A DNA stretch of 63,114 nt, filler included, from Reticulomyxa filosa (GCA_000512085.1; 26 parts of 26 records of this genome joined end to end with filler, not necessarily neighbours in it); one strand, 5' to 3'. Counted from the whole stretch's first letter, positions 1 through 42,676 are shown. Program-made: numbers and translations. The notes: a model not told the origin generated them from the sequence alone.

Positions 1-132
1 AAAAAAAAAAAAAAAAAAAAAATACGTATACGTAATGTTTTCTGGTGACATGATAAAATGTATATACAGATAAATCTCTTTTTTTTTTTTTTTTTGTGCA
101 CCTTGCGTAAACTTACCTCGAAACTACTCAAC

Positions 133-549: not shown

Positions 550-798
550 TTTTTATTATTTATAAATAATTAATATTCACTTCCAATTTGAAAAATCCTT
601 CTTTTCAAAACTGTTTGTATATTTCTCTTAAACGAGTATCGTTTTTCCTTTTTGTCCACTGATTAAACAAAAAATTAAAAAATTAAAATTAAAATGAAAT
701 AAAGTTATGAGTTTGCGGCGAGTAGTTGAAAATTTGCTTTCTTTTTCCTTTTTTTTTTCTTTTTTGTTAGTTTGGAAGAATTGACGCACGTGTCAATA

Positions 799-1665
799 AT
801 GCTTCGTGGGAAAGAAAAAGGACTTCAAAACAAAGATTTAAATGCAGACGAAGAAGTGATCGATTTCGGGCCTCCTCCCAATCTAAAACTCCGTGAATTG
901 ATACTTGACTCATTAACAACATTTATCAACAACAGCTCAGAGAGACAGCATCCTTGTGGGAACGACGGCACATATTGTTACACATGGGGTGCTGGGTAAG
1001 TTTGACTATTTTGTTTGTTGAGTGCTTTTTAGCAATATAATTAAAAAAACGTTGTTGACATATATACGTATATATATGTATGTGTACATGTATGTGCATA
1101 CTTATGTATGTGTTCAGTTATCACGGACAACTGGGACGCAAGGTAGGTCGTGGGCGTAAAAAATACGCAGTGACTCCAGAGTTTGTACACTGTGTGGAGC
1201 CAGTGAAGCACGTGTCATGTGGCGGTTTGCACACAGCGATTGTAACAGGTATTTGTCAATGTAACCGCCCAAAAAAAAAAAAAAAAAATTGACACTTTAA
1301 TCTATGTTGCAAGTCAATACTTAAAGAAACAGGACATGTGTATACGTTTGGTGATAACAAGAGTTGTCAGTTGGGTCACTCGACGGACCGGTTTGAGACT
1401 CCACCCACGCCGCAATTGGTAGAGGTACTTTCGAAAGCGACGTTCATCGTGTCGATCGCCTGTGGCTACGCGCACACCGTGGCATTGTCGAGCGACGGCC
1501 AGCTCTTTGCCTGGGGCGAGTCGAAGTACGGCCAAACTGGGCTAGGGACCACACGAAACCTGATCGAGTCACCACAGCTAATCACATTTGCATCATGTCC
1601 AAACAACTCCAAGCCACAAACTACGACGTCACAAGCATTGGCTCTTCCCACATTTGATTCTGGCA

Positions 1666-1704
<39 letters not shown>

Positions 1705-1949
1705 TGAAAAGTTTTGCATTTGACCAAAGTGCAAGGAGTGGAGTCAGTGCAGCGACGGGCGACTCGTCGAGCAATGAAACGTCATCCAGCACAGATCGAG
1801 GCATTCTTGCGAATAATAATAGCACGGCGATGCCTCTCCTTTCCTTCTCCTCCAATGACAACGCTTTCAACAAAGAAGCGCCACCTTTTTTTGTTCAAAT
1901 CGCATGTGGCGATAGGCATACCATTGCGAGGACAAACACTGGACTGGTA
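799..1949 (+). CDS. RCC1-repeat protein (partial, >=3 exons)
   Basis: Splicing out 996-1117 gives TWGAGYHGQLG. Further repeats: VSCGGLHTA, YTFGDNKSCQLG, IACGYAHTVAL, FAWGESKYGQTG, IACGDRHTIA. Confidence 0.9.
1668..1703 (+). repeat. (AAT)12 encoding poly-Asn inside the RCC1 gene
   Basis: Direct trinucleotide repeat. Confidence 0.95.
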
Positions 1950-2049
1950 NNNNNNNNNNNNNNNNNNNNNNNNNNNNNNNNNNNNNNNNNNNNTTAATTA
2001 ATTAANNNNNNNNNNNNNNNNNNNNNNNNNNNNNNNNNNNNNNNNNNNN
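1950..2049. other. Artificial contig spacer N44-TTAATTAATTAA-N44 (first of 25)
   Basis: Identical 100-nt block with stops in all six frames. It recurs at ~4545, 9156, 12723, 14874, 16109, 17694, 18794, 20251, 21364, 22490, 24522, 26887, 31165, 32973, 34429, 42677, 45684, 47326, 50479, 51999, 53172, 56085, 57398 and 61732. Confidence 0.99.
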
Positions 2050-2886
2050 CTTACGTACACCAACCAAAACATTCGACCACCTTTTTTTTTTTTTTTTTTG
2101 AATGAATTGGATGAAGAGGGGAAAAAAAAGATAGTCAAAAGTTTGTGTTGAAAGAAGGGCAAGGTTAAAAAGAGTGAAAAATAAAATAAACAAAAAAAAA
2201 AAGATAACAAACCAATGTGTGGTATTAAATGTAGCCCTTGACTGACAAGGCCCAAGAAATTAAACAGGAAATGATCAAAGCCGTGATGTATCAAAGTTGA
2301 TGTTACTAATGTATGGTACCTGTTCAATTTCCAATTTCTTATCGAAAACACAAAATGATCAGTCAGCGTTTCTTTTGACACTGGACACGAGGAAAAATTA
2401 TCCTTATTTAATTCTTCCTGTTTGCAATTTTGTGTTTGTTCTTAAAAAATGCACCGTTTGTACGATATTTTCCAAAGACAAACCAACGCTCTACCCTCCT
2501 TTTTTGCTCTTCTCCTCTCATTCATATCCTCACGTTAAATACCTTCTCGAGAATAAATGGATATTGAAGCAAAAAAAGACTTATTAAATGAGGAGTCGCC
2601 ACAGGCAGATGTATGTTGATATTCATCCCCATTTCCTTGTCTTCCCTTTTTTTCCGTTAAAAAAGCGTTCTCTAAGAGCAACAGGAACAGTAAAGAAAAA
2701 GTTTCCTAGCAAGCGATTGATAAAACAGCGCCGGAAACATAATACGTTTCAAATATTGCAAAGAAAGATGAGAATTCCTCAACAACGACAACAAAAAATT
2801 ATTGATTTTGCCAAATGTTGTTGCACCCAAGGTTCCTTCTCTTGTGAACACAACAATTTCAATAAAAAAGGGAGTGGGAACAAAAT

Positions 2887-4424
2887 TCACGGTGTAGTTT
2901 CATCTTTGATAGACTTAGGAGCAGGGTTGTGAAATGGTGGCATTGAAAAATACGGGTTGGAGGCATATTTAGAAGAATCAATCAAAGAGCTTTCATGTGC
3001 AAACAATTGGTCCCACGTTTCCACGCCAGTTGTCTTCAAAAGTGAGTAGCAAATGCCCATAGACCAAAACAAAGCATTTTTATTTTGAGACGACAGTTTC
3101 CACAATTCATCACAATCTTTGAGTTCTTCTTTAAATGATCGGATGGTGATCAAATCCTTAAATGATATGAGCTCAATCCTTTCTTTGTTCGGTGTCACAC
3201 TCTTATCAAACCATGTCAGTTTGAAATGAATACCGTTGTATTCTTTAAATAAAGGCGCAACATCTGTCAAAATATACACATATATGTGCATATACATAAA
3301 CATAAAAACAGAAATCATATATGTTAATCGATCATCCTGATAGCAAAATACAACGGAATACATACCAAAGTTAGGATTACGAGCATTTAACGCAATTAAA
3401 ATATTTTTTTGAAACTTTGGAAAATGTAAAATTCCGTCGTTTGCATCAAAGTGTCCTGTCAACACTGCCCAAATCTTGGCTTTGTCAATTGGCCTTGCAC
3501 AAGTGATTGGCAAAGCTGTGTGTTTGCTTTGAATTTTTTCCAGTGCTGCCCTGTGTGTATGTATGTGATATGTTCACCCAATCAAAAAATGAAAAATAAA
3601 AAATGAGGTTGCTTCTTCTTTTCTCACACCTTTGGCAAGATAGTAATAATTTCCACACAAGACAGACACAACTTTAATTTTTCTTCTTTAAAGCCCGTGA
3701 TGCTGTTGGTTTGGTTTGGTGAGACATTTCCAGCATGTTTTGAAGCAGGGCCGCCTTTGTGATCTTGTCCTTCCTTTGTGCGCTCCGTCTCAGTTAATTT
3801 GGATTTTTCGCTCTCGTTCTTTTCCTTTGTTTCTTTTTCCCTGTCCTTGTCCTTATCATTATCTTTGCCTTTTCGAAAGGACAAATGAGCCGGTAGTTTG
3901 GAGTTGGGAGAAGGACTGCGCAATCGTCTTCGGCCGTGTCTTCTGCGGTAATACGAGCGTGATCGACTTTTACTCTTGCTTCTGCCTCGGCCATTATGTT
4001 TGTGTCGATGTCTGCCTTTGCTTCGGTCGCTTCGACTTCGACTGCGGCTGCGACTTCGACTGTGAGTGCGAGTGCGACTACGACTGTGACTCGGACTACG
4101 GCTATGGCTGCGGGTCCCGCTCTTGCTTCTGCTCCTACTCCGACTACTGCGACTCCTGCTTCGACTCACGCTGCGACTTCGACTGTGACTTCGGCTGTTG
4201 CTTCTGTCGCTCTTGCTCTTACTTTTACTTTTGCTTTTGGTGCTTCGGCTGTGCGAACGAGACGAAGAAGAGCGTCTTGTCCATTTTTCAACACATTTTC
4301 GTTATTCGCGCAATGATATATCCATACACATTATATATGTATATATGCATATATGTACACAACAAACACATAATATTTTTATTTACAACGATATTAAATT
4401 GGAAGGGGAAGGGAATGGGACCAT
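2887..4424 (-). CDS. RS-rich (SR-like) protein, multi-exon; ends uncertain
   Basis: Long Arg/Ser dipeptide tract (~3920-4260) then a charged region. Downstream exons at ~2887-3560 have no family I can recognise. Start codon at 4424 is tentative. Confidence 0.55.
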
Positions 4425-4644
4425 AAAAAAACTCATTAGGATTCAAAAAACAAGGTCACTTAAAACGCTCACTTTTTGTTACCAACTTTGATCGTCTAAA
4501 AAACATTCAAAAGCTATAGTTTAAAAAATGCAAAAATAAGTCCANNNNNNNNNNNNNNNNNNNNNNNNNNNNNNNNNNNNNNNNNNNNTTAATTAATTAA
4601 NNNNNNNNNNNNNNNNNNNNNNNNNNNNNNNNNNNNNNNNNNNN

Positions 4645-7600
4645 GGTCGGTATTCTGCCATTCCTTGCGTTGCACCGCTTTTATCAGGATAAATTGTACC
4701 ATCATCTTGCACTAGACCGATTCGGCGATTCCCTTTCGCAGCATTGTGAAAATCTTTACCGGCTTCATTTCCAATGGCATATCCACAGGTCGGACACTTT
4801 GCGCTTTCGTTTGTTGCTGTGCAATCGGTTACAAAGTACAAGTGATTGTTGGGACATAGCCAGGCTCCAGATCCAGCCATCGCCCGAAGCAACGAGGCAC
4901 TCTGATCTTCCGGCATTGCTAACAGATATTGGCTAGCGTAGGCCATTGGGTTGTGGAATAGAATACTCAAAGGCGACTGTGGCAAAGATAAGACCACTCC
5001 AACTAAATGCCAAGCCAACCGATATATTTGCACATGCTCCAATGTTGCATTACCATTTTGATTTTTGAATAGTGAACACTCCGAATCACTTATTGCTAAT
5101 CTATCATACACATATGTTGCCCCTTCCCATTTGTGTATTTTAACGAATTTATTTTAATGAAAATACGTATACACAAAACTGTGAGAACAAAAATCGTACT
5201 CGGTCATGACATCGTGTAGATTGTGCACCTTGTAAATGATCATTGAAATATCTACTGATACTTCTTGTAAATTTCGTTATAGTGTCGAAATGGCTTGTGT
5301 CATTTTTCAAATACAATTCCGTAAATATACCTGTATTATTATTATTATTATTTAATTCAAACAAACATGAAATAACAACTCAATTCCAATCTTTTTTAAA
5401 AATGGAGTTTGTTTGTATGCTAACCAGCAATGAAATGTATAAAGCGTTTTCGATCAAAGGTTTGCCAATCAATTTGATTGGAAGTGAAGGCATTTGCAAA
5501 AACGGTGTGCATTTCTTTGAAGGCATTGTCCAATTTTTGGTTATTGCTATATTCCAATAATTGAAAGATATCATTGGAAGGTATATTTTTGATACGATCA
5601 CTTTGTTGTTGCTTGTCACTAATTCCTACTGAAAATCCAAACAAGCTCTTGAATTTTCTACCATTTAAATGCAAAGCGGCAGTGGAGCCTTTTCTTCTCC
5701 ATAACTCGACCATAAGGTAATATTTCAAGCCTTGACGTATCTGCCGCTCCATTTCAGCTGTTTTACTTTGATCGCATCTGTATAATTGTCCAATACTGCT
5801 ACACTCTTGTCCCGACAAGTAGAGTTGTATACGTTTTTCTTTGCCTTCCAACCAAAAGTGTCTGATTCCCTCCTTTCCATACGCATACGAAATGGCCATG
5901 GTTCGACTTATATAATGTGACAAATAATACGTCCACATTTTGCACTCCGCAATGGTTAACAGTATATCTAACAGACTCCTATTGTTTACTTTCTCTTTTA
6001 ATGTTTCTGACAATCGAACGAACTTTTGCACATCAGGTTTATCTTCTTGTTCTAGTCGTTTGCGATGCACCATTTCACGGAAGTGCAAAAAGTGTTCTTG
6101 CGCTCGAATCAACAGCACTGCAAATTCATTGTTCAAGTCACACGCTTGCAAATGTTGCATCAAAAGATTACGAACATTTTGATGCTCCTTTTTATTTTTT
6201 TCAAAAAAAAAAATTATTTGTTCGTTTATATTAGCCCTACTCCAAAAAAAAAAAGGAAGCAACTCCAAACTTTTTTTCGTATAATTGAAATCAATTGTGA
6301 GCCAATCTCCATCTTTGTAAAAGAAGTTGGAGCGAATAGCAACGTATTAGGTCTCCCTCCAATCCATTGAATTAACTTTTCGGCAAAGTCATTGGAGATC
6401 GTATATCCAATTTCGTGACGATGACTAGCAGCAGTCTTTAAGCCAAATACGCCGACATAGTTTTGAACGAGCCATTGCAATATCTCATTGATTTCATGTT
6501 CATTAACGCGGTCTTGGTTTAATGAATTCTGAACAAGGACCAATAGAGCGTTTAAGGAATCTATATTGTCAAACTGGCAATTGGCAAAGCGCTCTTTAAT
6601 TGAACGAGTGAGTGCACCATTTCTGGTTTGATACTTGGTGGCAGTGATACATAACATTGACAACTTCAACAAATCCCATCGTTGACTCAAATCTTTTGTC
6701 AAGTCTTTATTAGGACATCCTTGATTCAGCCACTGCACAACACGTTCAAATGCTTGTGAAATCGACGACAAATGGTCTAATTTATGTTTCATGTTTTCAA
6801 TCAATGTAATCTCCAATGATTTTTCCACAACCTCCAACACAATTGCGAGCATTTTCGCTACATACTCATGCAATGACAGTTGCTCCTTCCAAACGTTATC
6901 CATATTTTCCAAGTCTCTCTTTGAGTGGTCATGCACGACTGATAACACGTCCACAAAACTGCAAAGCAAATCATCATGGGACCACAATATTGCATATACT
7001 TCTGTCACCTGGAATCTAATTTCCTCCACTACCACTGCCTCTGTCTTTTTCTCTTCCTGTTCTTGTTCAACTACGACAAAGTCATCGCTTTCCTGCTTGT
7101 GAAATGGCTCCACTTCTTTCATTTCCTCGTTTTCTTTGTTTATTGCCTCCAAGTCCTCCAATTTGTCCCACATATTCTCTTCTTCACTCACACTTTCGTC
7201 ATCGCTATCGTGTGTTGTCTTTTTTCTTTTTTTTTTTTGATTTTTTTCTGGCTCTGGTTCTTTCGTTTTTTCATCTTCCTCCACCACCTCTTTTTTCTCT
7301 TCTTCTTCCTCTTCTATCTCTTTTTTGACGATGGCAACATCCTTCTTCGTTTTGGAGCCACTAAAAATTTTGAGAGCGTCCATGGATGCATGATCCATAA
7401 ATTCACAGATATGATTAATCAATATATTGTGAATTTGCTGCGGAAATCGATTCAAGCCAAATGTGGCATTGGCTTCCAAATGCACAATGTCGTGCAACAA
7501 TCTTTGCATCATGTCTCTGGACAAGTGGTTCAAATCGATCTTCAATGGCGTCGTTTGAATGAAAGCATGGATTTGCAATATCAAAAACTCCAACAAACGT

Positions 7601-9255: not shown

Positions 9256-12189
<2,934 letters not shown>

Positions 12190-12822
12190 TGAAAATCACA
12201 AGCTTCAGGAGACAAAATTTTTGAATAAAAATACAAATGCTTTCTTTTGAATGATGTTTCAAAAGATGTCTTGTTAGAAGAAATTCGTTTTTTTTTTTTT
12301 TGAAAAAAGGTTACTATAACAGTTCGGCGTGATCAGTGCCTCTACAATTGTGCTGAAGATTTCTCTCCGTTTTATTTGAAGACATTTCAGCCAGAGCCAA
12401 AGTCAATTTAGGAAGCGAAATACGTTATCGACTTAAAGTAAAAACACTGTACAGTCTTGTCTTTGAATTTGAATCAAAACATTGTACAGTTGAAGAACGA
12501 TGAATCCTTAGATCTGACGTGCATTATAAAACATTTGAATTGTTTTGTCAGGTTAATGTTTAGTTGTACATAACATAGGAGTGCCAAAAAAAAGATTAAA
12601 AAGAACAAAATTTTACATCAATTAGCGGAAGCAACAGCGACAAACGAAAAAAAAAAAAATTGGCTTTGAAACTAAAAAGATAGAGTGCCCTGCTTTGCGA
12701 ACCTTTTTTTTTTTTTTTTTTTNNNNNNNNNNNNNNNNNNNNNNNNNNNNNNNNNNNNNNNNNNNNTTAATTAATTAANNNNNNNNNNNNNNNNNNNNNN
12801 NNNNNNNNNNNNNNNNNNNNNN

Positions 12823-13211
12823 TTTAGGTATGGCAGTTTTTTTTGCAATCTACTGTATTATCTGGATCAGATGATGAAAGTGTTCGTTTGTGGGATATTC
12901 GATTTGATCAACAAATCCAAGTGTTCAATGGACATACAAATACTGTGAATGCTGTTGAATATTCACCATTTGTAATAAAGAATGGTATTGGTAATTCAAA
13001 TGTGATATGTTCTGGGTCACGTGATAATACAATTCGTTTTCGGGATATTCGATCAAATAAGAATCAATTGTATATGATCAAAGGAGATGATAAAGGATAT
13101 GATGGAATAGTTTGTCTTAAATTTGTTGGATTGAAAAAGAAAGAGAAGACAAACAATGATTTGAATTTGTGTTATGGTTCAAAGAATGGCCACATTCGTA
13201 TTTGGGGATAA
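12823..13211 (+). CDS. WD40-repeat protein, C-terminal fragment (expanded family)
   Basis: SGSDDESVRLWDIR, FNGHTNTVNAVEYSP, ICSGSRDNTIRF, ends CYGSKNGHIRIWG*. Confidence 0.9.
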
Positions 13212-14565
13212 TGTACTGTTTTGTCGAATAAGAAATGAAATTTTTTTTTGAAACGTTTGATTAAAAAAAGTAAGATGGTATCAAACTTTTTGATTTGATT
13301 GAATGCAAGCATTGAAGGGTGTGTTTTATTTTACTTTGTTGTTTAAAAAATTTGAAAAAGCTGCGTTCAATGTTTTAAAGTTGAAAAGCATAATAGATAC
13401 TTGTATCAAATTTCAAAATAGTTGCAAAGTATTTTAAGTATTGTATTTTCTTCAATACTAATTTTTTAAATTGTTTTTTGTGTAGTATCGAACACTCAAA
13501 ACAGGACAAAATAAAAAGGACCGCAGTGTGCATTACCAAAAACAGAATTTCTCTTGAAGTAGGATATGAATAATCAATAATTCAAAAGAATGCAATGAGA
13601 TAAAAATATCTTTTTAATATCAGGAATAGTTTATCTTAAGATGGCTCTATGTAATCTATGGATGTATGCAAAGCGAATATATCCTTCATGATATCATATT
13701 CTATATCCATTTACACAATCTGAAAACAAAGACGTTGAAAAGTAATATTTGAAGAATCCGTTTATTACTATTTATTCTTCTTTTCGACCTGTTTGCATTT
13801 GCAAGATGGAATTAGGAAACTCTCGCACTGAACTTAAAACTCATTAACCACTTTTTATAAATCAAATTTATCCAAGCGATGTAAAAGCATATTGTAAAAT
13901 ATGATATCTGAGACATATATTTGCTTTGCATAATTTCGATAATTCAATTGATTGAATTAGTATACATTAATTTTTTTATGTTTTGATATCATTCATCAAA
14001 TTTAATTTGATACGAAGAAGTTATCTATGAGAACCTCTTATTCAATGCTCTCTGTCTAAAATAAGTTGTAATAATCAAGAAACTGGAATTATTATAAACA
14101 AAAACATTATATCCAGTTTTTCATGTTTTCGAATAGAAAAATTGATTAAAATTATTCTCAACAAGATGTACATTTAAGTATTTGAAAGTTCATTTAATGT
14201 TGTGCAAATTCACACTTTGCTTATTATGTCATTGTGGAAATAAAACAAGTGATAAAAAAGGATTAAACATAAAAAAGTGGAGACATTTACAAATATTTGT
14301 TCATAGTTCGATAATTTTCAATATATTCAACTGATTTGCTCTTTATTTGTAATATTATATTGTTAAATAACTTAACATTTTCAAAAATCATTTCATTAAA
14401 GTCATAAATTCGTCCTATTTTAATAATATCTTACAAGAAAGCATGATAGAACAAATTTTTCAATGCGATTCAATCAAATCAAACAAGTTTAATATTATCT
14501 TAATCCTCTTTAATCAAACTTTTCAAACAAAAACACTTCCATTTCTTGTTCAACAAACAAGTTAA

Positions 14566-14872
14566 TTATCCCCAAATACGAATGGGACCTTTCAATGAAC
14601 AATAACACAAATTCAAATCACATATAACATTCCTTGTATTCTCTTTCTTTGTCAATGCAATAAATTTAAGACATCTTATTCCATTATCTTCTTTATCGTC
14701 TCCTTTGATCATATGCAATTCACTCTTATTTGATCGAGTATCCCAAAATCGAATTGTATTATCACGTGACCCAGAACATATAACATTTGAATTACCAATA
14801 ACACTCTTTATTACAAATAGTGAATATTCAACAGACTGTACAACACTTGTATGTCCATTGAACCGTTGAATT
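14566..14872 (-). CDS. WD40-repeat protein, C-terminal fragment (not in ORF track)
   Basis: Manual translation: IQRFNGHTSVVQSVEYSLFVIKSVIGNSNVICSGSRDNTIRFWDTRSNK...LNLCYCSLKGPIRIWG*. Tail-to-tail paralog of 12823-13211. Confidence 0.9.
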
Positions 14873-16927
14873 TNNNNNNNNNNNNNNNNNNNNNNNNNNN
14901 NNNNNNNNNNNNNNNNNTTAATTAATTAANNNNNNNNNNNNNNNNNNNNNNNNNNNNNNNNNNNNNNNNNNNNTGTAAAAATAAAATAAACATTGAAATG
15001 AATTAAAAGAGAATTTGAAAAAAAATAAAACAAAATATTGAATAAATGATTTGATTGACAGAGATGAAGATAATTATGAGCTTGATGCATCAATTACAAT
15101 GAGTAAAGAAGTATAGACTTTATGTTATCAATTACATAGTAAAAAATGAACTTGAAATTTCTGTTGGTCAGATTATCCTATCAAAGTAATAGTTAGCTGA
15201 AACAAAAAAGCGCTCTCCAGTTTTTTTTTAAGTTCCTTTTCCACTTTCATTTTATTTTTTTATGTTTTCTTTTGGAAAAATTGCAAAAGTTCTTTGTTTT
15301 TTGCTTCAAAAAAAAATACAAAATAAGTATCAACTGGCCTTTATAATATAAAATAAGAACATTCAACAAAATAAAAAGCAATACTATTTACATTTTCGAA
15401 TATTTTTTGCTAGACCAGAACCGGAAACATCGATCATTTTTGATTATTTTGTTGTTTTCTAGTTTGAGTAATGATTTCATTTTGATTTAAACAAACATTT
15501 GTTAGTTGAAAAAAAAAGTCTTCATCAAAGAGAAGAAAACTAGTGATGCTCATGTCAAACATTTCTGCATTACTTGAACTAATCGCTGCATAGCAAAACA
15601 TGTTCGTTTTTGTATAATTTACAAAAACAACGCAAAAAAAATTGTAAATACCGTATACTAAAAATCATAAATTTGGTTCATGTGATATCAGCAAAACAAA
15701 TAAATAAATTGTCATAGTTAAATTTACTAATGTAATAACTGATACACAAAAGCCGCAAAAAATCATTTAAACATATACATTATAATTTCATTTACAAATA
15801 AAATATTCATTTCATTGAGTACTTAATTTGCATATCATTTGTACAAAATGTTAAATGTCTAGAAATAACTAATTTGATGTAAATGCTAAAATAAATCATT
15901 TCTGATATCAATCAATGTATATTGTTTTTATTAAACAAAAATTCACTTTAAATCCCAAATAATACAACTTTACAAAAAAAAAAGATACAACAATGTTAAG
16001 AACATTCAAATTCGAGAATTGAATCTATTGTATTTTACTGGCCAACACGTTTTATAAAAATTAGTGCAACGCGTTTTCGCAATATCATTCTCAAATTTTG
16101 ATATCCTANNNNNNNNNNNNNNNNNNNNNNNNNNNNNNNNNNNNNNNNNNNNTTAATTAATTAANNNNNNNNNNNNNNNNNNNNNNNNNNNNNNNNNNNN
16201 NNNNNNNNTTTTGTTTTGTTTATTGAATCTTTGTAAAGTTAAAAAAAGTTGACCAAAGTGGTGTCATGATTTGTACTGTCTGCATGCTTGGAAAATATTT
16301 TTATGATGCCTTATGTGGGGAGTCTACAGTGAAGAGCTTCACTAAATGTAATACGAAATAGTGTTACTCTCAATGAGAGTGACTTTCAGTAAACAAAGTA
16401 AATTAAAGAATAAATCAAAGACAAAAGAAGTAAGAGAGAAAACAAGTAAGAGGTAGTTTGTTGAGGAGGTTTAACCCAAAGGGAGCTCCTCAGTTCCATA
16501 AGCGTTCAGCCATGTGTGATAAGGGCTTACCCTACACTTATTTAACCACAAAAAGATAAAAGGAAGTTCTTGGATTGCAAGCAAATCATACAATAAATAC
16601 AACAAAGATCAAAAAATGACAAACTTTCGAAAAGACAGAAATGAAGCTTACAAATAAGATTTGCGCGGAAGTTTTCTTTTAATTGCTGACATATTCATTC
16701 CTTTTGTTTGAGATGGTCTTTGATGATAAAACAAGATTTTCAAAATTACTTTGATAGTATAGAGACAGAATTGAACATTTCTGAAACTATATTCGTAATT
16801 ATTTGTACATTCATTCACAACAAGTGGGTTTTTCCTTTTTTGACGAATTTCTAAAAAGGGAGTTTGAAATTGATAATATTTAATAAAAAGCGAAAAGTAA
16901 AGAATCAAAAAAGTAAAGGCTCAGAAA

Positions 16928-17636
16928 ATGAAGAGCATGGAAGATAAAAAAGGCCAGGGTCTGAAAATTGAAGCGGTTTCAGATTCTTTTGAACAGCAAT
17001 GCTTTGACAGAAAGTGGGTTTTAAAATTGAATGATCAAGAATATCTTAATAATTTTACTTGTCTTATTTGCAGACAAATTGTAAATAGTCCAGTTGAAAT
17101 TAATTGCCCACAACATGATAATTTAGAAGAGGCACTAGTTGTTGGAGAGAGTTGTTTGACACAATTTCTTAATACTAATAATAACTCTTGTCCTATCCAA
17201 CCGCATGAAAATTGTCGATATTATAAAATCAAGTCAATGCAAAAACAAATTTCGAATTTGAGTGTGATGTGCCCAAGACAATTTCAAGAAGATATTAAAA
17301 CAGTCGATTACAGAAATGAAAAAGAAGGACAGACGGTTGGAATGACAATATGTAATTTTAAAGGAAAATTAAGGGAAGTGAATGAACATTTAAAAAATGA
17401 CTGCCCTTTGAAATTTTTAAATTGTTGGTTTAAGCCTTTTGGATGTGACCATATCTGCCCGAAATACGAATTGGAAGATCATTTGACAGCGGATATGAAA
17501 ATGCATTTTGAATTAGTGACGAAATCATTTAATTCATTGCAGCAAACAATCCAATTTTATCAAGTTTGTATTTTTTTGGTGTTTTTTTTTTTTTTTTTTA
17601 AAAAAAAGAAAAAATAATTACAAATATGTGTAATAT

Positions 17637-17667
<31 letters not shown>

Positions 17668-17693
17668 ATAAAACAGAAAGAGATTAGAAAAAA
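16928..17693 (+). CDS. Atypical RING plus TRAF-type zinc-finger protein (N-terminal part)
   Basis: CLIC..CPQH..GESC..CPIQPH..C, followed by CPRQF..CNFKG..HL..C and CWFKPFGC..HL..H fingers. Intron at 17564-17676. Confidence 0.8.
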
Positions 17694-19149
17694 NNNNNNN
17701 NNNNNNNNNNNNNNNNNNNNNNNNNNNNNNNNNNNNNTTAATTAATTAANNNNNNNNNNNNNNNNNNNNNNNNNNNNNNNNNNNNNNNNNNNNTTTTTTT
17801 CTCCTCTAAATAGAATTGATGATTCAATAACATTGAGAAAAAGAGAACAACCAAGAGATGCAGAAGGCCATGAATAAAAAATTTTTTTGATCTTGATTGA
17901 GATAAAATCAATTTCATTTTCATTTTTGTGATTTGTGATTTAAATCTCCAACTTTCATTTTTGTTTGTGAGGGATGAGATGGATGATGAGAGGGAGATTT
18001 TTTAAAATTCAAACAAATTTTTTTTCAATACATTAAAAAAAATTTCCCGTCCTAAAAGTTTTAGGAATATTAACATGCTTTTCTTTTCAACATTTTGTAT
18101 TGGCTGCTGATATTGATAATAATTATTATTCACATTTTTCTTTTTCATAACCAGTTTCTTTCGTAATGCAGTTATCCGATTTTCATTAAAATATGCACTG
18201 CCAAATACAGATATAATACAATGCTGTATGAATATGCTCCAAGCGTGTATAATTTGCTTTCGTGCCTTTCAACTTCTTCGGCAATTGTATCCTTTTTTGA
18301 CAAGTCAACGACTTTTGTGCATTTTTAGCACGTTCACAAATCCATACACGACCGCGGCCTTTTGTTTGTCTTATGTTAAACTATTTCCGTTATTTTTTAA
18401 AATTTATTTACGTAAACTAACTATAAATGCATAATAAGATGAACACAAATTTATCGTTTTCGCCATGTTATTTTTTTCTACAAATAATGAATATTCAATG
18501 TTACGAATACTATTTGTATATTAATGCTGTAGCAAATTACAAATTATAATTTAATAACTATATGGCGAAAATTCTAGACAATACATATCATTTATTTATA
18601 AATAATTAAATTTATTCTCTTAAATATACTGTTTTATTTACTGATCCAGAACAAATAAATTGACTAAATCAAATTACATAAATATTTCTACAGTGTGGGA
18701 CGTCTGCTGATAGTGTTGGTGCACTAACTGTAATACAGAGGTGTTTACTTAGAAGAGAATCGGAGTTTCGTAAAACGAAAGTGATTTAAATAANNNNNNN
18801 NNNNNNNNNNNNNNNNNNNNNNNNNNNNNNNNNNNNNTTAATTAATTAANNNNNNNNNNNNNNNNNNNNNNNNNNNNNNNNNNNNNNNNNNNNATATATA
18901 ATGAAAAAAGAAGAATTATATAATAATTTTGAAATTTTAAATAAGATGATAATTATTTTAAAAAGTATCGTGCATGTGTATTTTTTCGGGACCCCCATAT
19001 ATATAAATGCATATAAATAAATCAAAAAATCAAATTTATTTTTTGTGATTTGAAGAATATTGTTGAATGATTAGAGAAAATTTTATTTTATATATTTATT
19101 TTTTTTGATTGAAAGTGCGGAACGTAAATATAATGATGATATTATCATA

Positions 19150-20250
19150 CATATTATCTAATGAACAGATTGTTATGTCCATGAATAATACAAATTTTGG
19201 GTAAATGTTGGAATGATTGAAGTGATTTATGATCAAATGATTTTTTTTATATTATCTATTGGATAATAATATCTATCACTTGTAATGATACATTTACCAC
19301 TTATATGCCCATCTAAAATTATAATAATACCACATATTTATTAGCATTAGATTGAAGATTAAAGTCTATAATTATTTGATAAATAAAATTAATTATAGCA
19401 ATTTTTGTGATTTTTCCACACAATGATATTATTTTATAGTTGAGTTCACTTCCAAATAAACTTTTAAATTTTTTAAAGAATTTTCTACATCTGGAAGATT
19501 ATCCCGTTTTGAATTATCGTTATATTCATTGATTGAAATTATAATAACTAATCCATTTTTAATTATTTTCATTTGATTATAATCTTGTTTACAAAGTTTA
19601 ATTTTTTTTGAAGAATGAGTATGCACGTAATCATGATATTCGTTATCGTGTTTTTTTGTTTGTTCCCATGTTTTATCATTTTTCTATTTAACAAATAACA
19701 AATACATTATATATTTTTATAAATAAAACAAATAAATAATAATAATAATACAACAAAATGTTATTAGCAATATAATCAAATTGATTTAATTGATTTTTTT
19801 TCATATTCAATTGTTCTTCTTCCATATTCACTTTTTTTCTTTTCATTCCTACTTGTTCTTTTACTCCCATTTGTTTTTTTCACGTTATCACTTTCTCCTT
19901 CCATATATACTTGGATCTCTTCATTCATTTTTTCTTCAATCAACCAATTACTCAATTTGGTTTTCATGTGTATTAACAAACTGTCACCTTTTTCCTTCAA
20001 CCCTCCAATAATATGTATAAATTCATTATTCAATCAATTTAATTAATACACAATATTAGTTTATTGTTATGTTAAAACGTATATCGTTTGATAAGTATTT
20101 GTCACTAAATAATTTGATAATTTTAATTGTAAAAATCATAAGTTGTCATAAGAACTTGTATACAGATCCTTGAAAACACTTTTCTGTCGAAAAACTCAGG
20201 ATTCATATAATATTCACATATTGTTTTCTTTTAATACTATTTAGAAAAAT
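19150..20250 (-). pseudogene. Degenerate Kelch-like plus caspase-like (peptidase C14-type) gene
   Basis: EFIHIIGG..HMKTK (Kelch-type end). Then NGLVIIISINEY..NLPDV, GIIIILDGH (His at 19305-19307), IITSD..IDNIK, SFQHLPKI, read across several frameshifts. Confidence 0.6.
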
Positions 20251-20684
20251 NNNNNNNNNNNNNNNNNNNNNNNNNNNNNNNNNNNNNNNNNNNNTTAATT
20301 AATTAANNNNNNNNNNNNNNNNNNNNNNNNNNNNNNNNNNNNNNNNNNNNCCTGAGTCAAGATATAGACAATCAGTAATTCAAAAAATTGCAATTATTCA
20401 ATATTTCAGGAATAGTTTATGTTTAGATAATTCAATGAATTGTATTTACAAAAAGAAGAGATTTCGGATAGACATTACAATATTAATCCAAATTTAATTA
20501 CTTGTATGGAATTACTTTCTTTTTTATTTTCTATATAATTGATATTTATTTGATGAATTTGATTTTTTTTTGATTGCCCTTATTGATGTAATTTATTATT
20601 TGTTTGTGTTGTAATGATTCATTTTTGAAATTCTTTCATTCAAATGTTTAATTTCATCCTATTTATAATTGTGATAAAACCAGA

Positions 20685-20820
20685 CTAGATGTTGTTAATG
20701 ATCTGAAATATTTTTCAGATGATCAAACCATTTTGTCTTGCTCAAAGGCAAAAAATAGAAGTTAACGACATAGTGTCATGCTCTTCTAACTTTATGATTC
20801 AAATTTGGGGATGTGACTAA
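20685..20820 (+). pseudogene. WD40 remnant
   Basis: DVVNDLKYFSDDQTILSCS and TIVSCSSNFMIQIW in broken frames. Confidence 0.5.
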
Positions 20821-34528: not shown

Positions 34529-37500
34529 GCATTTGAAAGCAAAAGCCAACTCAAAATTGTGTCCACAGCTACACAAGTGAAAGAAAAGAGATCTAAAAAG
34601 CAGAGCCAGTTTGATAAGAGATCAGTTAAAAGAGAAAATATGCAAGAGTTTCACGATGATGATGATGATGATGATAATGATGATGATGATGATAAAAGGA
34701 AGATGATAAAAATTCGATGAAAAACTCAAAAAGAAAAGGTATTTGATATCGTGTCAATGTTGACATTGGTGAAGAAAGCAGAGGAAGAAGCAAACCAAAT
34801 TAAGGACAAAAATGTGATATTACTTCTTGGAGGCACAGGCACTGGGAAATCTACCCTTGTCCATTTCTTGGCAGGATCTACGATGGAGCAACAAGAGGTG
34901 GACGGACGACCTCACATTTGTCCGACGAAAGTGAAAAACAAGGCTCTCGCCAATGTTAGGAGCAGTTCGAGCACAAAATCGGAGACCAGATATATCACCG
35001 CTGTTCCAATTGATTTGAAAGAAATGGGCGTATATGGAGACCAAGACACAGTTGTGCTTTGTGACACTCCTGGCTTTGAAGATACAAGTGGCCCTGAAGT
35101 CGATGTTGCCAATGGCATTGGTATCATTAAGGCGCTCCAAAATTGTAAGAGTGTCAAACCTGTGGTTCTCATCACCTATACTGCTTTGGGATACCGAATG
35201 AATTATATCCGAGAATTGGCTCGAACCTTGGTTGGAATTATCCCATCCATCAAAGATCATCTTAACACTTTTTCGTATGTACTCACCAAATTCCCTGATA
35301 AGGAAAAACAATTTTTCCATGCTATGGTGAAAGATACCCTCTGCAACATGGCAAAAGACGAGTCTAATGAGGGATACAAAGCGCTCTTGGCTGACATTGC
35401 AAAAAAAACGCAGAAACAGGTGATTGCGCCCAATTTATTGGAAGACTCTCCCAGCGAATTGTTGGAAAAATTGTCAGATGTCCAATACTTCATTCAAGAA
35501 CCAAGTGAAGTGTTCCAACCTTTCATCACTGAAAAATCCAGTACGGCAGTTCGGTTGCAAGTTGAAAAACACAAATCCAACATTTTACTTGCATTCAAAC
35601 ATCACAAGTATCAAAGTGCCAAAGATAAATTGGATGACCTTACTGGCTTAAATGCTGTTTTGAAAAATGATTACATTGAAAGTGATTACAATGATTGCGT
35701 TAAAAAATTGACCCAAGAATGGAATGAAAAAATTGAACTTGCCAAAAATAATTTGAACAAGGGTATGGCGGCCCCACATGCAATCAGCAAAGAGGATGTT
35801 TTGGCTTATAAAAAGACAATTGACGAACTCAAATCTGCTGATTCATTGAGAAGTCATTTGAAAGATGCGATTAGTGCTGATGCTTTGGTGCAAAACTTGA
35901 ATGATCAAACCCACCATTTGATTAGTGAAATTGAAAAGAATATGGAAAATGAAATTGCATTAAAAGTACATTTGGGCAAATTGGCACAAGTGAGAAACAT
36001 CTTTCCCAATTTTGCGCCTGTTTATAAACAAGCTTGTCAAACATTGGCAAATCGTTTGACCAATTCTGTAGATACTTTAAAAGAGTGTATCGAAAAGAAT
36101 AAATTTGAAGAAGTGAGAAAAGCTTTGGAGGCAATTATAAAAGTATTACCTCTTCAGCCCAATTTGGCTACCATGTTTGATGTCAAAAAAGAAATCAAAC
36201 AGTTAGAAACATTGTTGATGGCCCATTTAAATAATGTGACAGACAAAGGGCTTGTTGCAGTCAAAAGGGCCGTGAAGGATGAATCTGCCTCCAAAAAGGA
36301 AGAAAAAGATGATAATCCTTCTATTCGAATTGATAAACTTGCCAAACCTGATATCGAATTGTTGGAAATAAGCGCAACAATATTAGAAGCAGCAACGAAT
36401 GTATTTGAACCACCTTGTGAACATTTCAATCTTAGCAAACCAACAAAGGAATTATTTTATTCATTTTTAAATGAAATAATTGTTTATTTTGATAAAATCA
36501 GTCAAAAAATAACATCTCTTTTCGAAAAACAAAGATACCTTGCATTTGATGAAATCAAAGGATTTGTGAACGTGATGGATGATCTTCGAAAGTTAAAGGC
36601 AGTCGAACAAAGAACACAAAGATCTTATTTCCAAATTATTGAAAGAATATTTGGATTTGTACGTGATGTTCAAAAAGATGTGGACGTAATGCTTCCTTTG
36701 TTAATTAAACAAGACCCATCATTTGATTACAATCGACTTTTTGAATGTGTAGGTTGTGTGAGTCGATCAAAATGGATTGTCGAAAAGCAAGGAGGCGAAA
36801 GTACTGAATTAATGGACACCATCAAAGAGAAATTGATTGCGCATTTATGTGAATTACAACAATCATGCCAGCATTTGGAATTGGATTTGGATCATCCAGA
36901 TCATTTGGAACAAGGTCGAAGAGTGGTCAGTCATCTTGACAAATTGCGTAGTTTGGAGGCAATCATTCCGGAAATTTCCAATTATCGTAAAGATATTGAT
37001 GTTCAAATTGAACGTGCCATCAGAGCAACATTGTCAACAATCGAAAATGAATTTTCATTAGAAAAAAAAGGAGTGAATTATCAAAGAGAAGTCAAGGAAC
37101 AATTGGTGAAATTGAAAGTATATGCAGAAAGTCTTACTCATGCCAATGCATTTTTGCAACAAAAAGAATTAACGAGTGCACAAGATTTGGATTTTAGAAT
37201 TGGTTCCATTGAAGATGAATTAAAAACGAGCGAAAAAGCCCTTGAAGAAAAAAGAAAAGATTTTGATAATGACATTCAGAAAGTGCAGGAAAAAATAACG
37301 TTATTGGAGGATATCGGTTTTGAGTACCAAAGATTGGCCAAAAAAACGAATTGGAGAGATAAAAATATTCCACAAAAAGCTATTGACTTTTTGAAAGAGC
37401 AAGGATACAAAGCGATTGACGAAGTGGAGAGTGAAGAAGAAAAAGAAAAGGAAAAGTTTGAGCAACTTCAAGAAAGAGCAAAACAATTTGACGACACGCA

Positions 37501-39614
37501 AATAAAACAAATTGAAGAATTAAACAACAACTTGAAAAAATATCAACAAATTAAAAAAGAATTTCAGAAGTTACAATCAAAAGAAAAGATGGCATTTGAG
37601 AATGCCTCTGAATTTTTGAAGAGTCAAGATTTTTCAGAAACTGAAATCACAAGATGGATGAATAATGAACCTGAACTCGTTGAAAAGATTAAACAATATG
37701 AACGAGAAATTGAAAAATTTAAAAATGTGGGATATAACTTTGGTGTATTGAATGCCGCAAGAACAGAGAAGGTGTTGAATTATTCGAAAGAATGTAAATC
37801 AACTCCATTTTCTTTCACTGATGATCAAAGTGGAGATAAAAACCAAGGTACTTTGAAACAAGATCTTGGAAAAGCATTGAGTTCAGTGGAACATTATTTG
37901 AGATGTTATTGCGAATTTGTTCATAATCAACTTCGATCTTTGGATTACACTAAAATTCTAACTGTTTCAAAAACAGATGTAAATGATTTTGCAGATAAAG
38001 TTGAAACCATTTTGAATCGATTGAATGAAATATCAAAATTAGAACAGAATCATCCAGTGATATTTGCATTCTTTCCACAGGATATGATGAAACAATTGAT
38101 TGGCAAACTTGAGAAATGTTGGTTGGATTTATCTGATGAAATGATGAAATTGGCAAAACAAAGCAATTTACCAGCATTGAAGAGCAAGATATTTGTGACC
38201 AAAGCCTTGAGTGCATTGGATGAATATACCAAACTCAATTGTAAATTCCGTGACTTGTTTATGAAGTATCAAGAAATTTTATTTAACGATGTGATTGACA
38301 CTTCCAAAGTATTCAAAGCCATTGAAGGCCATCAATACACTGAAGTAGCAGCAGAAATGTCAATACTTAATCAACGTAAAGATGGAGATGGACAAGTGGA
38401 GAAAGTATTTGAAGAAGTGAAAGGCTCTCTTGCACGTTTTTTGAAAACCTTGACTAAAAGTACAATGATGAAGGTTTTGATGCTTGGAGAAAATGAAGTG
38501 GAGTTAGAAAGCGTGATACAATTGGAAGAACAGATGCAATGGATTGACGACGCAAAGAATTTTGTGTTTGAATATGTAGATAAGAAGACGCAACAGGAAA
38601 TTGAAAAGATTGAAAATGAAACAAAATCGGCAATTGAAAAATGGATGTTAAAGGTGTTGGGCACTGTGAAGGCAGCAATCAATTCTTATAACTTTCGAGA
38701 GGCGGAAGAGAAGATCCGACTCGTTCGAAAGTTTACTCGTATTTTGGGCAATCGATTTGATCAAATTTTCTTTGGTGACAACAAGGAAGAAAAGATGCAA
38801 GAAGGTGCTAGCAAGATTGTCAACCGTGTTGATGAGCTTGAAAAACAAGTGGAAAGTGTGTTGAAAGGTGTTGTAAGCAAATACAAAGATATAAAATTGA
38901 GTGGTTGTCAATTCAGCCCATATGCTTCCAATCCACCAAAAGATCTTTATGCTAAGTTGAGCAAGGTGATGGAATCAGCTACCACATCGAATTACAAAGA
39001 GGCATGGACAGAAATTGAAGAAGATATCACCAAAAAAGTTCGAGATCTATTGCTTGATGCCCGTGGAAAAGTAAGCAATTCAAATTCACGAGAGAGTGAA
39101 TCTTGTATTCGTCTTTGTGGGTCAGTGTTGAATTCTTTACCCGAACACATGCAAACAATTCTGAGAGATGAAGTTAGACAATGTCGAGATGATATCAAAT
39201 ACGAGGCAGAAACTTCTTTGAAAGAAGTGGAGCAAGTAATGCAACAAAAGAATGCCCAAGACATCAATGAATTACTTGATCGTTGCAACATTAATCAAGA
39301 AAAGACTATTAAATCTGGTGTGGACAAAATGGCTCGAGAGATTGTATCACGTATAGATAAACAGTGGATAGACGAAGAAACTTCAGAGGCACTTTCTAGT
39401 ATGGAAGAATTGTATCGCTTCAAAAATACATTTAAAAAGAAAATGCCAGACTTGGATCGATATTTTGTCAATGCCCGTGGTAGTTTGAGTAATAGTTTTG
39501 ATAAATATCAAAAACATATTATTACTACTTTTGAATCAGTGGATCGAGGTACAACTGGATTGGAATGGACAGAAAAGGCTTTTGATTTTGTACTTATTTG
39601 TTTGGAAATTAAAA
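34529..39614 (+). CDS. Giant protein, part 1: P-loop GTPase (AIG1/Era-like TRAFAC) plus long helical/coiled-coil region
   Basis: ORF 34751-39631. G1 GGTGTGKST (34829), G2 SET, G3 DTPG (35063), G4-like TKFP (35285). The same frame is open back to the contig start apart from one TGA at 34718. Confidence 0.85.
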
Positions 39615-42600
39615 GTCAATGCTGCTGGTGATGTTAACACGGACGAGTTGTTGCCACCCAATTTCAATGAAAAGATCAAAGAATTGGACAATAAGATCTC
39701 GACTTATTTTACATCCCTCCAACAAAAGTACAAAAAGAGCATCGAAACTATGAGCGCAGAGGAATTGCATGCCGTATTGAATACGGTGAAAGCGGTGGGA
39801 AGCGAAGGTCCATTCTTGCAAAAGGTGAAGACGTTTATGAGAAAAAAATCAGCTTGCGGCATCCCTGAAGACGCTTCTAGAATTATCACTTACTCGGAAA
39901 TAACGCGCGATCTGACCGCCCATTTGGAAAAAATGGCCGATGAGACAATCACTTATGGCATAGTAAATGATAAAACAAAAACAAATGGCGCAGCAAGAGA
40001 ACGCTTTTTTGGACAACTCAAAGAGAGACTTGACTTTTTAAAACAGGTGGCTCAACTGAAAAATCATATTCCCAATACTCAAAAATTGGAAAGCTGTGAA
40101 ATAATATTAGAAAAAGAAGCACAAGAGTTTGTTAAAAAAGTCACGGAAAATAAAAAGTGGAATTCAGCTAGTTGCGATCAAATCAATTTATGTTACAATT
40201 GTTTTGTTGCTATGCAAAAAAATGGAGTCCTTTCGAATGTTGTGAAGCCGCAACTTGAAACGATCGAAAATGTGGTAAAAAATCGAGTTGAACAACTCGA
40301 AAAAGAGGCTATAGGTGATTTGGATACTGAACATCTTACGTCTAAATTAGTATCAATGAAGGAAATGTCTGTATATATCTTTAGCTTCAAGAGTATGGTG
40401 GACAAACGTATCGATGAACTGCTTGGAGCTTATAAAAGACAAAGCAAAGGTGGTATGAGTGTTTCATTGCTCGCGCTGAAATTGGAAAAGGATCCAAGTG
40501 GAATTGGTAAAATGCTTGTTTCTGAACATAATGCGTTCAAGGGATACAACGTAGCATTGTTCAATGTTAAGACTCAATCACATGGAATTGACCACGTTTT
40601 GAAAAGAGTGGAAGCCAAAGGTGACAAAATAGATGCCGCGAAAATAGAGAAAAAATATGAAGAATTTGATTCAATATATCGGAAATTGATAAAAGAATAT
40701 CTGCAAGAAAAGCCCAATCTCACTACGTTGGTAAGCAATACAAAAATGATTACTCGTGGTATCGAACAAAAACCAGATGACGTCAATTGGAATGCAACAA
40801 TTCGAAATTGTATACCTAACCTAATGGCACACATTTTTGCATTGTGGACACTCCAAAATGCGCAATTCTATTTTGATGCAAAAGGTGCTGATAACCAAGA
40901 TTCTTATTTATTACAGCCGCATGCAGCCCAAGTTGTTTCTATATTCCGAATGCTGGGAATTGATGAAAATAAGCTGATCAACAATTTGATCCAGATCAGA
41001 ACTGGAGAAGGCAAGTCTGTGACATTAGCAATTGCTTCTTCCGTGTTGGCATTGTTAGGATTTGATGTGAGTTGTGCATCATACAGTGATTATTTGAGCT
41101 GCAGAGACTTTAAGAGTTTTGAACCATTGTTTGGTGCTTTGGGTATCACTGATCACATTCATTATGGTACTTTCAACAAACTTTGTGAAAGAATCATTAA
41201 TGATGGAGGTGATGTTCGTAAATTAGTGGAAAACATGATCATGCCTAATGATGATAAAAAGACTGTTGAAACTTCACGAGTGATTCGAGCCAAAATATTG
41301 TTAATTGATGAAGTTGATGTATTTTTCAATAAAGAATTTTATGGAGATTGTTATTCACCTGCTGCTACATTACGACATGATGTCATTACTAACCTGATTG
41401 ATTACATCTGGGCTAACAGAAATTCCTACCCCACTTTGGATGGCATTAGAGAATCAGAAGAATATGAAGAATGTTGTAATGTGTTGAAAGAATGGTCTGC
41501 ATTATTGGATGAGGCAATCAAAGATATGTTAAATGATATTCAAAAATTCGAATCTCATGGATATCAAGTGAGTAATGACAAAATTGGGTACAAAGAACAA
41601 GATAGTATTTGCTATAATATTCGTTATGGTTATAAGACATTATTTGCATATTACTATGAGAATGAACAAAATAAAATCAGTGATGAGAGTTTCAAAAATA
41701 ATATATTCATTTCATTTCAAATTGGTAATTTTTCTTATGCAGAGGTTCCTAAAAACTTCTGTTGTATTATGGGTGTGAGTGGTACATTGAAGACATTGAG
41801 TGCACCAGAACAAGAAGTTGTGGAAAAAGATTATCATGTTTCAAAACACACTTATATGCCATCTTTATTTGGTGATAATAAACTTATCTTTGCAGAAAAG
41901 AAAGATATTCTCATTGTGGAAGAATGTGATTACTTTACTACTCTTAAGAAAGAAATTGATGATAGATTGATTGGGACAAATCCTGCAACAAGAAGAGCAG
42001 TATTGGTATTTTTTGAATCCAAGAAACAACTGATGGAATTTTATGAATCCTCCAATTTCCTTGCAAGGAAAGAGAATGCAATTATAATGACTGAAGAAAA
42101 CACTCATGAAGAAAAAGAATATTTGGTTAAACGTGCAACTGGTTCTGGACAAGTGGGATTGTTTACTAGAGCGTTCGGAAGAGGAACAGATTTTGTATGT
42201 CTTGATCCGATTGTTGCTGCAAATGGTGGAGTTCATGTGATTCAAACATTCCTTTCTGAAGAATTATCTGAGGAAGTACAAATTAAAGGACGAACTGCAA
42301 GACAAAATAGCTCTGGTTCATATAGTTTGGTGTTATGTGAGAAATCACTTGAGAGATTTTTGATCACCAAAGCGGAAATTGACAATGCTCGAAAGGCAGG
42401 AAATTTTTATCCATTGCTTGATGCAAAGAGAACTGAATTCTTTAAATCCCAATATGCAGAAAGTAAGAAATATGTGGAATATGCTGCAAATGAACATAAA
42501 TTGGGTGAGGAATTGATTGCAGCCTTAAAAAAAAATAATGTGAATGCAGTGAAAAAAATGTTATGTGATCGAAACAAAGGAACAGAACTGGAAGATCTTT

Positions 42601-42676
42601 CAAGAACAATTGTTCTTATGGATGGAACTGGATCAATGGATCATTTGTTGCAGAAAGCCAAAAATGCAGTCAGCAC
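39615..42676 (+). CDS. Giant protein, part 2: SecA-like SF2 ATPase/helicase followed by start of a vWA domain
   Basis: PHAAQ, IQIRTGEGKS (41001), YSDYLSCRD, IHYGTFN, LLIDEVD (41307), GVSGT, AVLVFFE, FGRGTDF (42177), GGVHVI, QIKGRTARQ (42279). MIDAS-like IVLMDGTGSM at 42621. Joins part 1 by a +1 shift at A4 (39611-39614). Confidence 0.88.

Follow-up and report, generated by a model that had tools for sequence, protein, structure and literature searches.

The gene RFI_33142 of the freshwater foraminifer Reticulomyxa filosa (GCA_000512085.1) belongs to a widespread, large, and unstudied family of proteins with an unusual and conserved architecture. It fills an entire contig of 8,148 bp at positions 34529 to 42676 of the DNA analyzed here (the window; 63,114 nucleotides, comprising 26 records of this genome joined end to end with filler), and the contig contains nothing but this single gene copy. 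Members of the family are soluble proteins of 2,700 to 3,600 amino acids (aa), in which a variable N terminus is followed by a GIMAP/Toc-like G domain, a helical stalk of ~1,700 aa, a SecA-derived ATPase, and a C-terminal vWA/MIDAS domain. SecA is regarded as a membrane-translocation motor of bacteria and plastids. In this family, giant soluble proteins of the eukaryotic cytosol and of intracellular bacteria contain a SecA-derived motor, probably together with its substrate clamp, and combine it with a MIDAS domain and a GTPase of the immunity type. Searches and folds were run on the reading-frame pieces of the gene separately. All features of the window described below lie on the plus strand, and their coordinates are counted from its first nucleotide.

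Architecture of the family and its SecA-like motor

An exhaustive search with the motor identified 4,127 cluster representatives at an E value of <1e-3, including 914 at <1e-30. Of the best 150 representatives, 64 have a length of at least 2,400 aa, and every one of them carries the GTPase followed by the SecA-like module (median spacing, 1,875 aa); 56 of these 64 also have the vWA tail. Shorter family entries resemble fragments. The full domain order is present in the complete homologs P0016 and P0028, and both pieces of RFI_33142 match full-length homologs. The fusion of a GTPase, a SecA-type motor, and a vWA domain, which an earlier note had proposed from the sequence of this contig, is therefore real and conserved. 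As that note had also supposed, no functional study of the GTPase-stalk-SecA-like-vWA family was found in the literature searched.

All of the motifs listed in the earlier note are present on the plus strand in the order given there. The motor (40923 to 42359) consists of NBD1, motif III, and NBD2. Its motifs are Walker A TGEGKS (NBD1; 41001-41018), DYLSCRD (NBD1; 41088-41108), YGTFN (41163-41177), Walker B IDEVD (NBD1; 41304-41318), motif III GVSGT (41772-41786), GRGTD (NBD2; 42177-42191), GGVHVI (NBD2; 42225-42242), and motif VI QIKGRTARQ (NBD2; 42279-42305). Walker A, Walker B, and the two arginines of motif VI do not vary across the family, and this copy reads KGRTARQ..SGS. The earlier identification as a SecA-type ATPase holds. 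Pfam matches were to SecA_DEAD (E, 2.7e-10) and Helicase_C (E, 1.3e-5), and SecA/SecA2 models alone matched in NCBIfam, with the SecA models falling at residues 791 to 934 of the frame 1 piece (39615-42674). A motor profile built from 15 sequences retrieved 24 SecA/SecA2 sequences from PDB (E, 1e-17 to 1e-10), followed by Mss116 at 1e-3. The AlphaFold2 model of the motor had a predicted local distance difference test (pLDDT) score of 86, and its top 36 Foldseek matches were all SecA/SecA2, the next family being approximately ten orders of magnitude weaker. In VIA-align, 516 of 641 residues were aligned with substrate-engaged SecA (6itc_A; Z score, 30.9), and aligned lengths were 500 to 518 residues for SecA versus about 320 for DEAD-box helicases (i.e., ~190 more). 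Finally, hhalign against Escherichia coli SecA gave a probability of 98.8 (E, 7e-17), with residues 99 to 592, including residues 221 to 377, aligned without a break.

The last two comparisons bear on an insert (about 140 aa; 41349 to 41762) that separates Walker B from motif III and lies at the place of the preprotein cross-linking domain (PPXD) of SecA. Because SecA aligns over ~190 extra residues and hhalign runs unbroken through the PPXD, the insert is probably a PPXD homolog, although the Pfam PPXD model (SecA_PP_bind) was silent. Behind NBD2, a 41-residue helix (42408 to 42530) corresponds to the first helix of the SecA helical scaffold domain, according to the secondary structure of the model and an alignment that extends to SecA residue ~747. 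The family shares with SecA/SecA2 the motifs TGEGK[ST], DYL..RD, DEVD, G.[ST]GT, and RGR..RQG..GS, together with an insert at the PPXD position and the scaffold helix.

The differences from SecA/SecA2 are also substantial. Sequence identity is 15 to 20%, and in a quick maximum-likelihood tree with a single outgroup, the family forms a separate clade (Shimodaira-Hasegawa-like approximate likelihood ratio test [SH-aLRT] support, 100) whose branch, 2.63 changes per column in length, sets it apart from E. coli SecA as well as from the remaining SecA-like proteins of bacteria. The gene is therefore not canonical SecA from a contaminating bacterium. The two-helix finger, wing domain, and C-tail of SecA are absent: the distance from motif VI to the vWA domain is only ~95 aa, occupied by the 41-residue helix and another, short helix, whereas E. 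coli SecA has ~300 aa in this region. This leaves no room for the missing elements and makes the polypeptide-threading motor proposed in the earlier note doubtful. Furthermore, the motor is part of a soluble GTPase and vWA protein of ~2,700 aa, and the eukaryotic copies reside in a cytosol that lacks SecYEG.

G domain, stalk, and vWA tail

The GIMAP/Toc34-like P-loop G domain (34802 to 35416) includes G1 GGTGTGKST (34829-34855), the switch I motif SET (34979-34987), G3 DTPG (35063-35074), and a degenerate G4 TKFP (35285-35296). An AlphaFold2 model of 34721-35800, based on a 32-sequence alignment, had a pLDDT of 88, and Foldseek ranked GIMAP7, GIMAP1, GIMAP2, and Toc34 first (E, 3e-7 to 1e-4), followed by GBP1 and atlastin; a resemblance to mitofusin was also seen. 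GIMAP, AIG1, and Toc34 GTPases constitute a septin-related clade of TRAFAC GTPases, and the fold thus agrees with the TRAFAC-like GTPase read earlier from the motifs. In sequence comparisons, the Pfam AIG1 profile did not match the G domain, to which only MMR_HSR1, RsgA, and generic P-loop models gave weak matches. A single G-domain query returned nothing useful from PDB sequences, and a G-domain profile matched P-loops and, weakly, septin-9. Residues G37, G40, G42, K43, S87, T89, D115, and G118, which belong to G1, G2, and G3, do not vary among family members. G3 continues into a signature of the family, D..GPEVD.AN, which in full reads D-T-P-G-F-x-D-T-x-G-P-E-V-D-x-A-N and is likewise invariant. 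G4 has the form F-T-K-(F/Y)-x, with T-K in 25 of 32 sequences; the Asp that specifies guanine occurs at position +3 in 4 of these sequences and at +4 in 7.

GIMAP, Toc34, septins, and GBPs dimerize across their nucleotide sites. The homodimer model of the G domain shows a symmetric pairing through the P-loop, switch I, and switch II, with an interface score (ipSAE) of 0.61 versus 0.00 for the best control, a mark attained by 21 of the 30 proteins whose solved structure is a pair and by none of the 23 solved as single chains. Homodimer runs shared at least 88% of their contacts, and the pLDDT of the partner was at least 83. The model supports a GIMAP-like pairing across the nucleotide sites, as a prediction whose passing score may reflect memory of solved GIMAP/Toc dimers. 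The domain therefore resembles GIMAP/AIG1/Toc34 in its fold, in keeping G1 to G3, and in its predicted pairing; it differs in the missing AIG1 match, the lack of a conserved G4 Asp, its own signature, and the stalk of ~1,700 aa behind it.

In RFI_33142, the stalk spans about 1,830 aa (35417 to 40922), including the frame change described below. It is conserved within the family, with 27% identity across 807 aa to a Legionellales homolog (E, 2e-67), and matches nothing in Pfam or the ESM Atlas. The earlier note described some 1,800 aa of helical sequence here. AlphaFold2 models covering its two ends contain helices, and a composition that is rich in E, K, and L and contains 2 to 3% Pro and 3 to 5% Gly fits this description, which was checked structurally at these two ends. 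No transmembrane segment, membrane anchor, or signal sequence was found anywhere in the protein, which is accordingly considered soluble. Upstream of the GTPase, no domain is common to the 57 members examined; C2, U-box, and Ank domains occur once each. The member with the U-box is a full-length protein (L001/P0039; also L005, a Pseudomonadota metagenome-assembled genome [MAG]) that carries this domain at its N terminus (E, 4e-8) and is encoded near a large ankyrin-patatin gene.

Only the start of the vWA domain is present on the contig (42594 to 42674), comprising the first strand and the MIDAS motif DGTGS (42621-42635) before the contig ends after about 27 residues. The earlier MIDAS call holds in the homologs: in 22 homolog tails of about 210 aa, D-x-T-x-S and a later D are invariant. 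Pfam matched VWA in 6, VWA_2 in 5, and VWA_4 in 3 of these 22 tails, mostly under the cutoffs (best E, 5.8e-6); the P0039 tail matched VWA_2 at 5e-5. A profile of the tails had no match among PDB sequences.

Taxonomic range and candidate functions

A protein search with the first long frame retrieved 12 further R. filosa proteins (41 to 77% identity), and one R. filosa contig (ASPP01003559.1, or L035; 22.5 kb) carries two tandem copies at 1-6549 and 10001-20725, each with frame changes. Bdelloid rotifers have many copies, including some on Adineta vaga scaffolds of 17 to 18 Mb. Other eukaryotic members come from Hexamita inflata, in whose genus the family is also expanded, the choanoflagellate Helgoeca nana, and eukprot transcriptomes, and one metagenomic contig with a family member has the eukaryotic neighbors Tudor-SN and serine carboxypeptidase. 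On the bacterial side, a scan of 185,579 species genomes revealed 31 loci, some of them on Mb-scale contigs. Those with a named lineage are nearly all from intracellular bacteria (i.e., Legionellales, Coxiellaceae, Wolbachia, "Ca. Bandiella," Simkaniaceae, and Parachlamydiales); many others are labeled just as gammaproteobacterial or proteobacterial MAGs, and a few as Bacteroidetes/Bacteroidaceae or Kapaibacterium. A Legionellales copy (L004) encodes 3,272 aa, has dnaE on one side, a PARP-ankyrin gene on the other, and recJ in the vicinity, and is homologous to the R. filosa protein from the G domain through the stalk. The surroundings of this copy and of another bacterial locus (L008) are true bacterial chromosome. 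Since full-length members reside in Legionellales chromosomes, the architecture extends beyond protists. A search of IMG/VR gave no relative, and a viral origin was rejected.

Several observations were made alongside this survey. The PARP-ankyrin gene of L004 (14832-17162, minus strand) encodes a PARP catalytic domain with ankyrin repeats and lies ~2 kb downstream of the giant gene, past a 633-aa open reading frame that has no Pfam match; its product looks like a host-directed effector. In a gammaproteobacterial MAG (L026; 3.8-Mb contig), a frame starting at 8453 encodes 2,136 aa with two serial SecA-like modules (aa 510 to 1015 and 1377 to 1942), which belong to a bacterial group more distant from SecA and outside the family clade. 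In Wolbachia wCon (L014), frames at 7361 and 11909 encode adjacent giants of 1,515 and 3,299 aa, both with SecA-like modules. In the ESM Atlas, the region 40752-42674 returned a cluster of 543 "SecA P-loop/SecA DEAD-like" proteins, of which 87% are labeled Eukaryota and Chordata is the commonest label, hinting that related SecA-like proteins reach vertebrates or samples associated with them.

In a quick tree rooted on E. coli SecA, five R. filosa paralogs form one clade (SH-aLRT, 100), which indicates expansion within this lineage. Bacterial and eukaryotic members interleave, with bacterial sequences in basal positions. Because the root branch is very long and a single eukaryotic clade was not rejected by the approximately unbiased test (P = 0.072), we name no donor. 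Related domains have been mentioned in studies of intracellular bacteria. Legionella fallonii lfa2470 [SecA DEAD-like] appears in a list of genes acquired from eukaryotes (Gomez-Valero et al., PMC4256840), and a GIMAP-type GTPase and SecA-like domains were noted among the host-directed effectors of Amoebophilus (Zhang et al., PMC3482391). These proteins are of the same domain types and were likewise read as eukaryote derived or host directed; the likeness is one of description, as both are passing mentions that include neither the fused GTPase-stalk-SecA-like-vWA architecture nor a functional test. Further literature searches brought up no other account.

The confinement of the family to phagotrophic eukaryotes and intracellular bacteria, together with its expansions, points to host-microbe conflict, and a protein-remodeling role in such conflict is plausible. 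Our combined reading, to which we give slightly less than an even chance, is that the protein would be a cytosolic machine for protein extraction or remodeling in host-microbe conflict. In this scheme, G domains would pair across their nucleotide sites in the manner of GIMAP, Toc34, septins, and GBPs, so that nucleotide binding would control whether two long arms come together. The MIDAS site of the vWA domain, at the opposite end, may hold a target or adaptor protein by one of its acidic residues, and the SecA-like clamp ATPase would grip and pull a polypeptide segment. The outcome would be extraction or remodeling of proteins in the cytosol rather than translocation across a membrane. Eukaryotic copies may act on ingested or resident bacteria or on their compartments, and the copies of Legionellales, Coxiellaceae, and Wolbachia may be host-directed effectors or mimics. 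The logic is comparable to that of Midasin/Rea1, a protein that likewise has an acidic tract and a nucleotide-driven motor, with a very long helical linker and, at its terminus, a MIDAS domain by which a protein ligand is gripped for pulling. Midasin, however, has an AAA+ ring as its motor and no GTPase, and the sole sequence match is the P-loop; it is no relative. A bolder form of the proposal, which we consider rather unlikely as a whole, would make the family a new class of cytosolic machine in which a SecY-free clamp ATPase of SecA origin is linked by a 1,700-aa stalk to a MIDAS adaptor and a GIMAP-like GTPase that dimerizes. Its targets for extraction or unfolding would be proteins located on bacteria or on the compartments that contain them. 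This class would have been exchanged between phagotrophs, where it would serve immunity, and intracellular bacteria, where it would supply counter-weapons or mimics. The family makes it possible to test how a motor is repurposed, is a candidate participant in conflict between protists and bacteria, and can mark gene exchange between host and symbiont.

Several points weigh against the proposed extraction machine. With the finger and wing missing, pushing in the style of SecA is not to be assumed, and because the G4 Asp is unconserved, GTP specificity is uncertain. The Pfam matches of the vWA tail lie near or below the cutoffs. A patchy range and expansions are typical of conflict genes and are no proof of a conflict role, which likewise finds no counterpart in PADLOC: its models matched neither R. 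filosa piece, and a bacterial homolog gave a P-loop-level match only. The RFI_33142 copy, with its in-frame TGA and frameshift, may be dead. In addition, SecA is a close cousin of the DEAD-box helicases, and the substrate may be a nucleic acid.

The same machine could instead serve cell biology, as a scaffold or remodeler of membranes, phagosomes, vesicles, or the cytoskeleton in large phagotrophs, and intracellular bacteria would have taken it over for manipulating host trafficking. GIMAP, atlastin, and GBP-type GTPases act on membranes, and the similarity of the G domain to GBP1, atlastin, and mitofusin would suit such a role, as would the single members with an N-terminal C2, U-box, or ankyrin domain. 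Legionella, moreover, often acquires host trafficking proteins (PMC4256840). We nevertheless judge this role unlikely, given the very patchy taxonomic range, the lineage-specific tandem expansions with 41 to 77% identity that are unusual for core machinery, and the absence of a membrane anchor or transmembrane segment. Less likely still is a SecA-like module that works as a superfamily 2 helicase or translocase on RNA or DNA, as a sensor or remodeler, with the vWA domain and GTPase used for signaling or assembly. The module retains helicase motifs I, II, III, and VI, and the next structural matches after SecA are DEAD-box helicases, DinG, UvrB, and Mfd (Z scores, 21 to 23). The SecA matches are, however, better by approximately ten orders of magnitude in E value and by ~190 residues that include the PPXD-like insert, and Pfam scans found no accessory domain that binds nucleic acids.

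Reading frames and origin of the R. filosa locus

Coding sequence spans the contig, whose GC content is 30 to 42%. The earlier note had described a single frame of ~2,700 codons open at both ends; it is instead divided by a stop and a frame change into two long frames behind a short upstream stretch. From the 5' edge, the layout is 63 codons, a TGA (34718-34720), 1,631 codons, a surplus A at 39611-39614, and, in the next frame, 1,020 codons. In frame 0, no stop occurs between the contig edge and the TGA or within 34721-39628, and frame 1 is open from 39489 through the contig end. The 63-codon stretch (34529 to 34717), which runs off the 5' edge, contains the acidic tract noticed earlier, now located at 34655-34693, and corresponds to a weakly conserved acidic linker that precedes the GTPase in the paralogs. 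The TGA lies in this linker; the paralogs read through the region, and the next ATG downstream is at 34757. Either a nonsense change or an error in the assembly has produced it. At the second lesion, an alignment with the paralog P0004 follows frame 0 up to K at 39611-39613 (..FDFVLICLEIK) and frame 1 from V at 39615-39617 (VNAAGDV). As the colinearity with P0004 passes from frame 0 at 39613 to frame 1 at 39615, the A4 run at 39611 to 39614 contains one extra base, and the change is a frameshift rather than an intron. A 67-nucleotide GT-AG intron (39549-39615) that would join both frames was considered and was rejected on the same colinearity.

A separate question, independent of the function of the family, is whether this locus is a recently inactivated pseudogene in which the TGA and the surplus nucleotide are real mutations. 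We regard this as a possibility of some weight, though distinctly less than an even one. One stop and one frameshift within 8.1 kb speak for it, and frame changes also occur on other paralog contigs, at about one per 2 to 5 kb on every R. filosa paralog contig examined. This frequency looks, however, like systematic assembly error, and all three frameshifts inspected fall in A-runs, i.e., the one at this locus and two in L035 (an A10 at about 1950 and an A2 where A3 was expected at about 18600). The assembly was presumably built from pyrosequencing reads. The ratio of nonsynonymous to synonymous substitution rates (dN/dS) against the nearest paralog, RFI_02028 (contig L038), is 0.16 to 0.18 at a dS of 0.5 to 0.6, which corresponds to purifying selection. 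The catalytic motifs are intact, and this copy retains every one of the 58 columns that are invariant in the motor alignment. The low dN/dS and the retained columns indicate that the copy was constrained until recently or that the lesions are assembly errors.

It is very improbable that the contig is DNA of a bacterial symbiont or culture contaminant rather than foraminiferal nuclear DNA: the gene has no introns, the contig has no other gene, and full-length homologs with 47 to 54% identity in the motor exist in Legionellales and related MAGs, but the single clade of R. filosa paralogs on the tree stands apart from every bacterial row, the number of further R. filosa members, some of them in tandem, would be high for a single bacterial genome, the GC content of 34 to 39% is similar to that of the other R. 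filosa contigs compared, and the family is firmly nuclear in A. vaga and Hexamita.

The deposited NCBI model for the locus, "hypothetical protein RFI_33142, partial" (P0001), was identical (100%) to the first long frame in a protein search. It begins downstream of the P-loop and contains two introns (GSLSN|INAAG and SGSY|TEIDN), the first of which skips the frameshift and the second of which drops a segment past motif VI. Both introns were rejected on paralog colinearity, and the segment deleted by the second is conserved in the family. The models of other R. filosa paralogs are likewise broken into separate "genes" (RFI_03864/03863, 06773/06774, and 29278/29276). The NCBI models of this gene and its paralogs thus conceal frameshifts as false introns.

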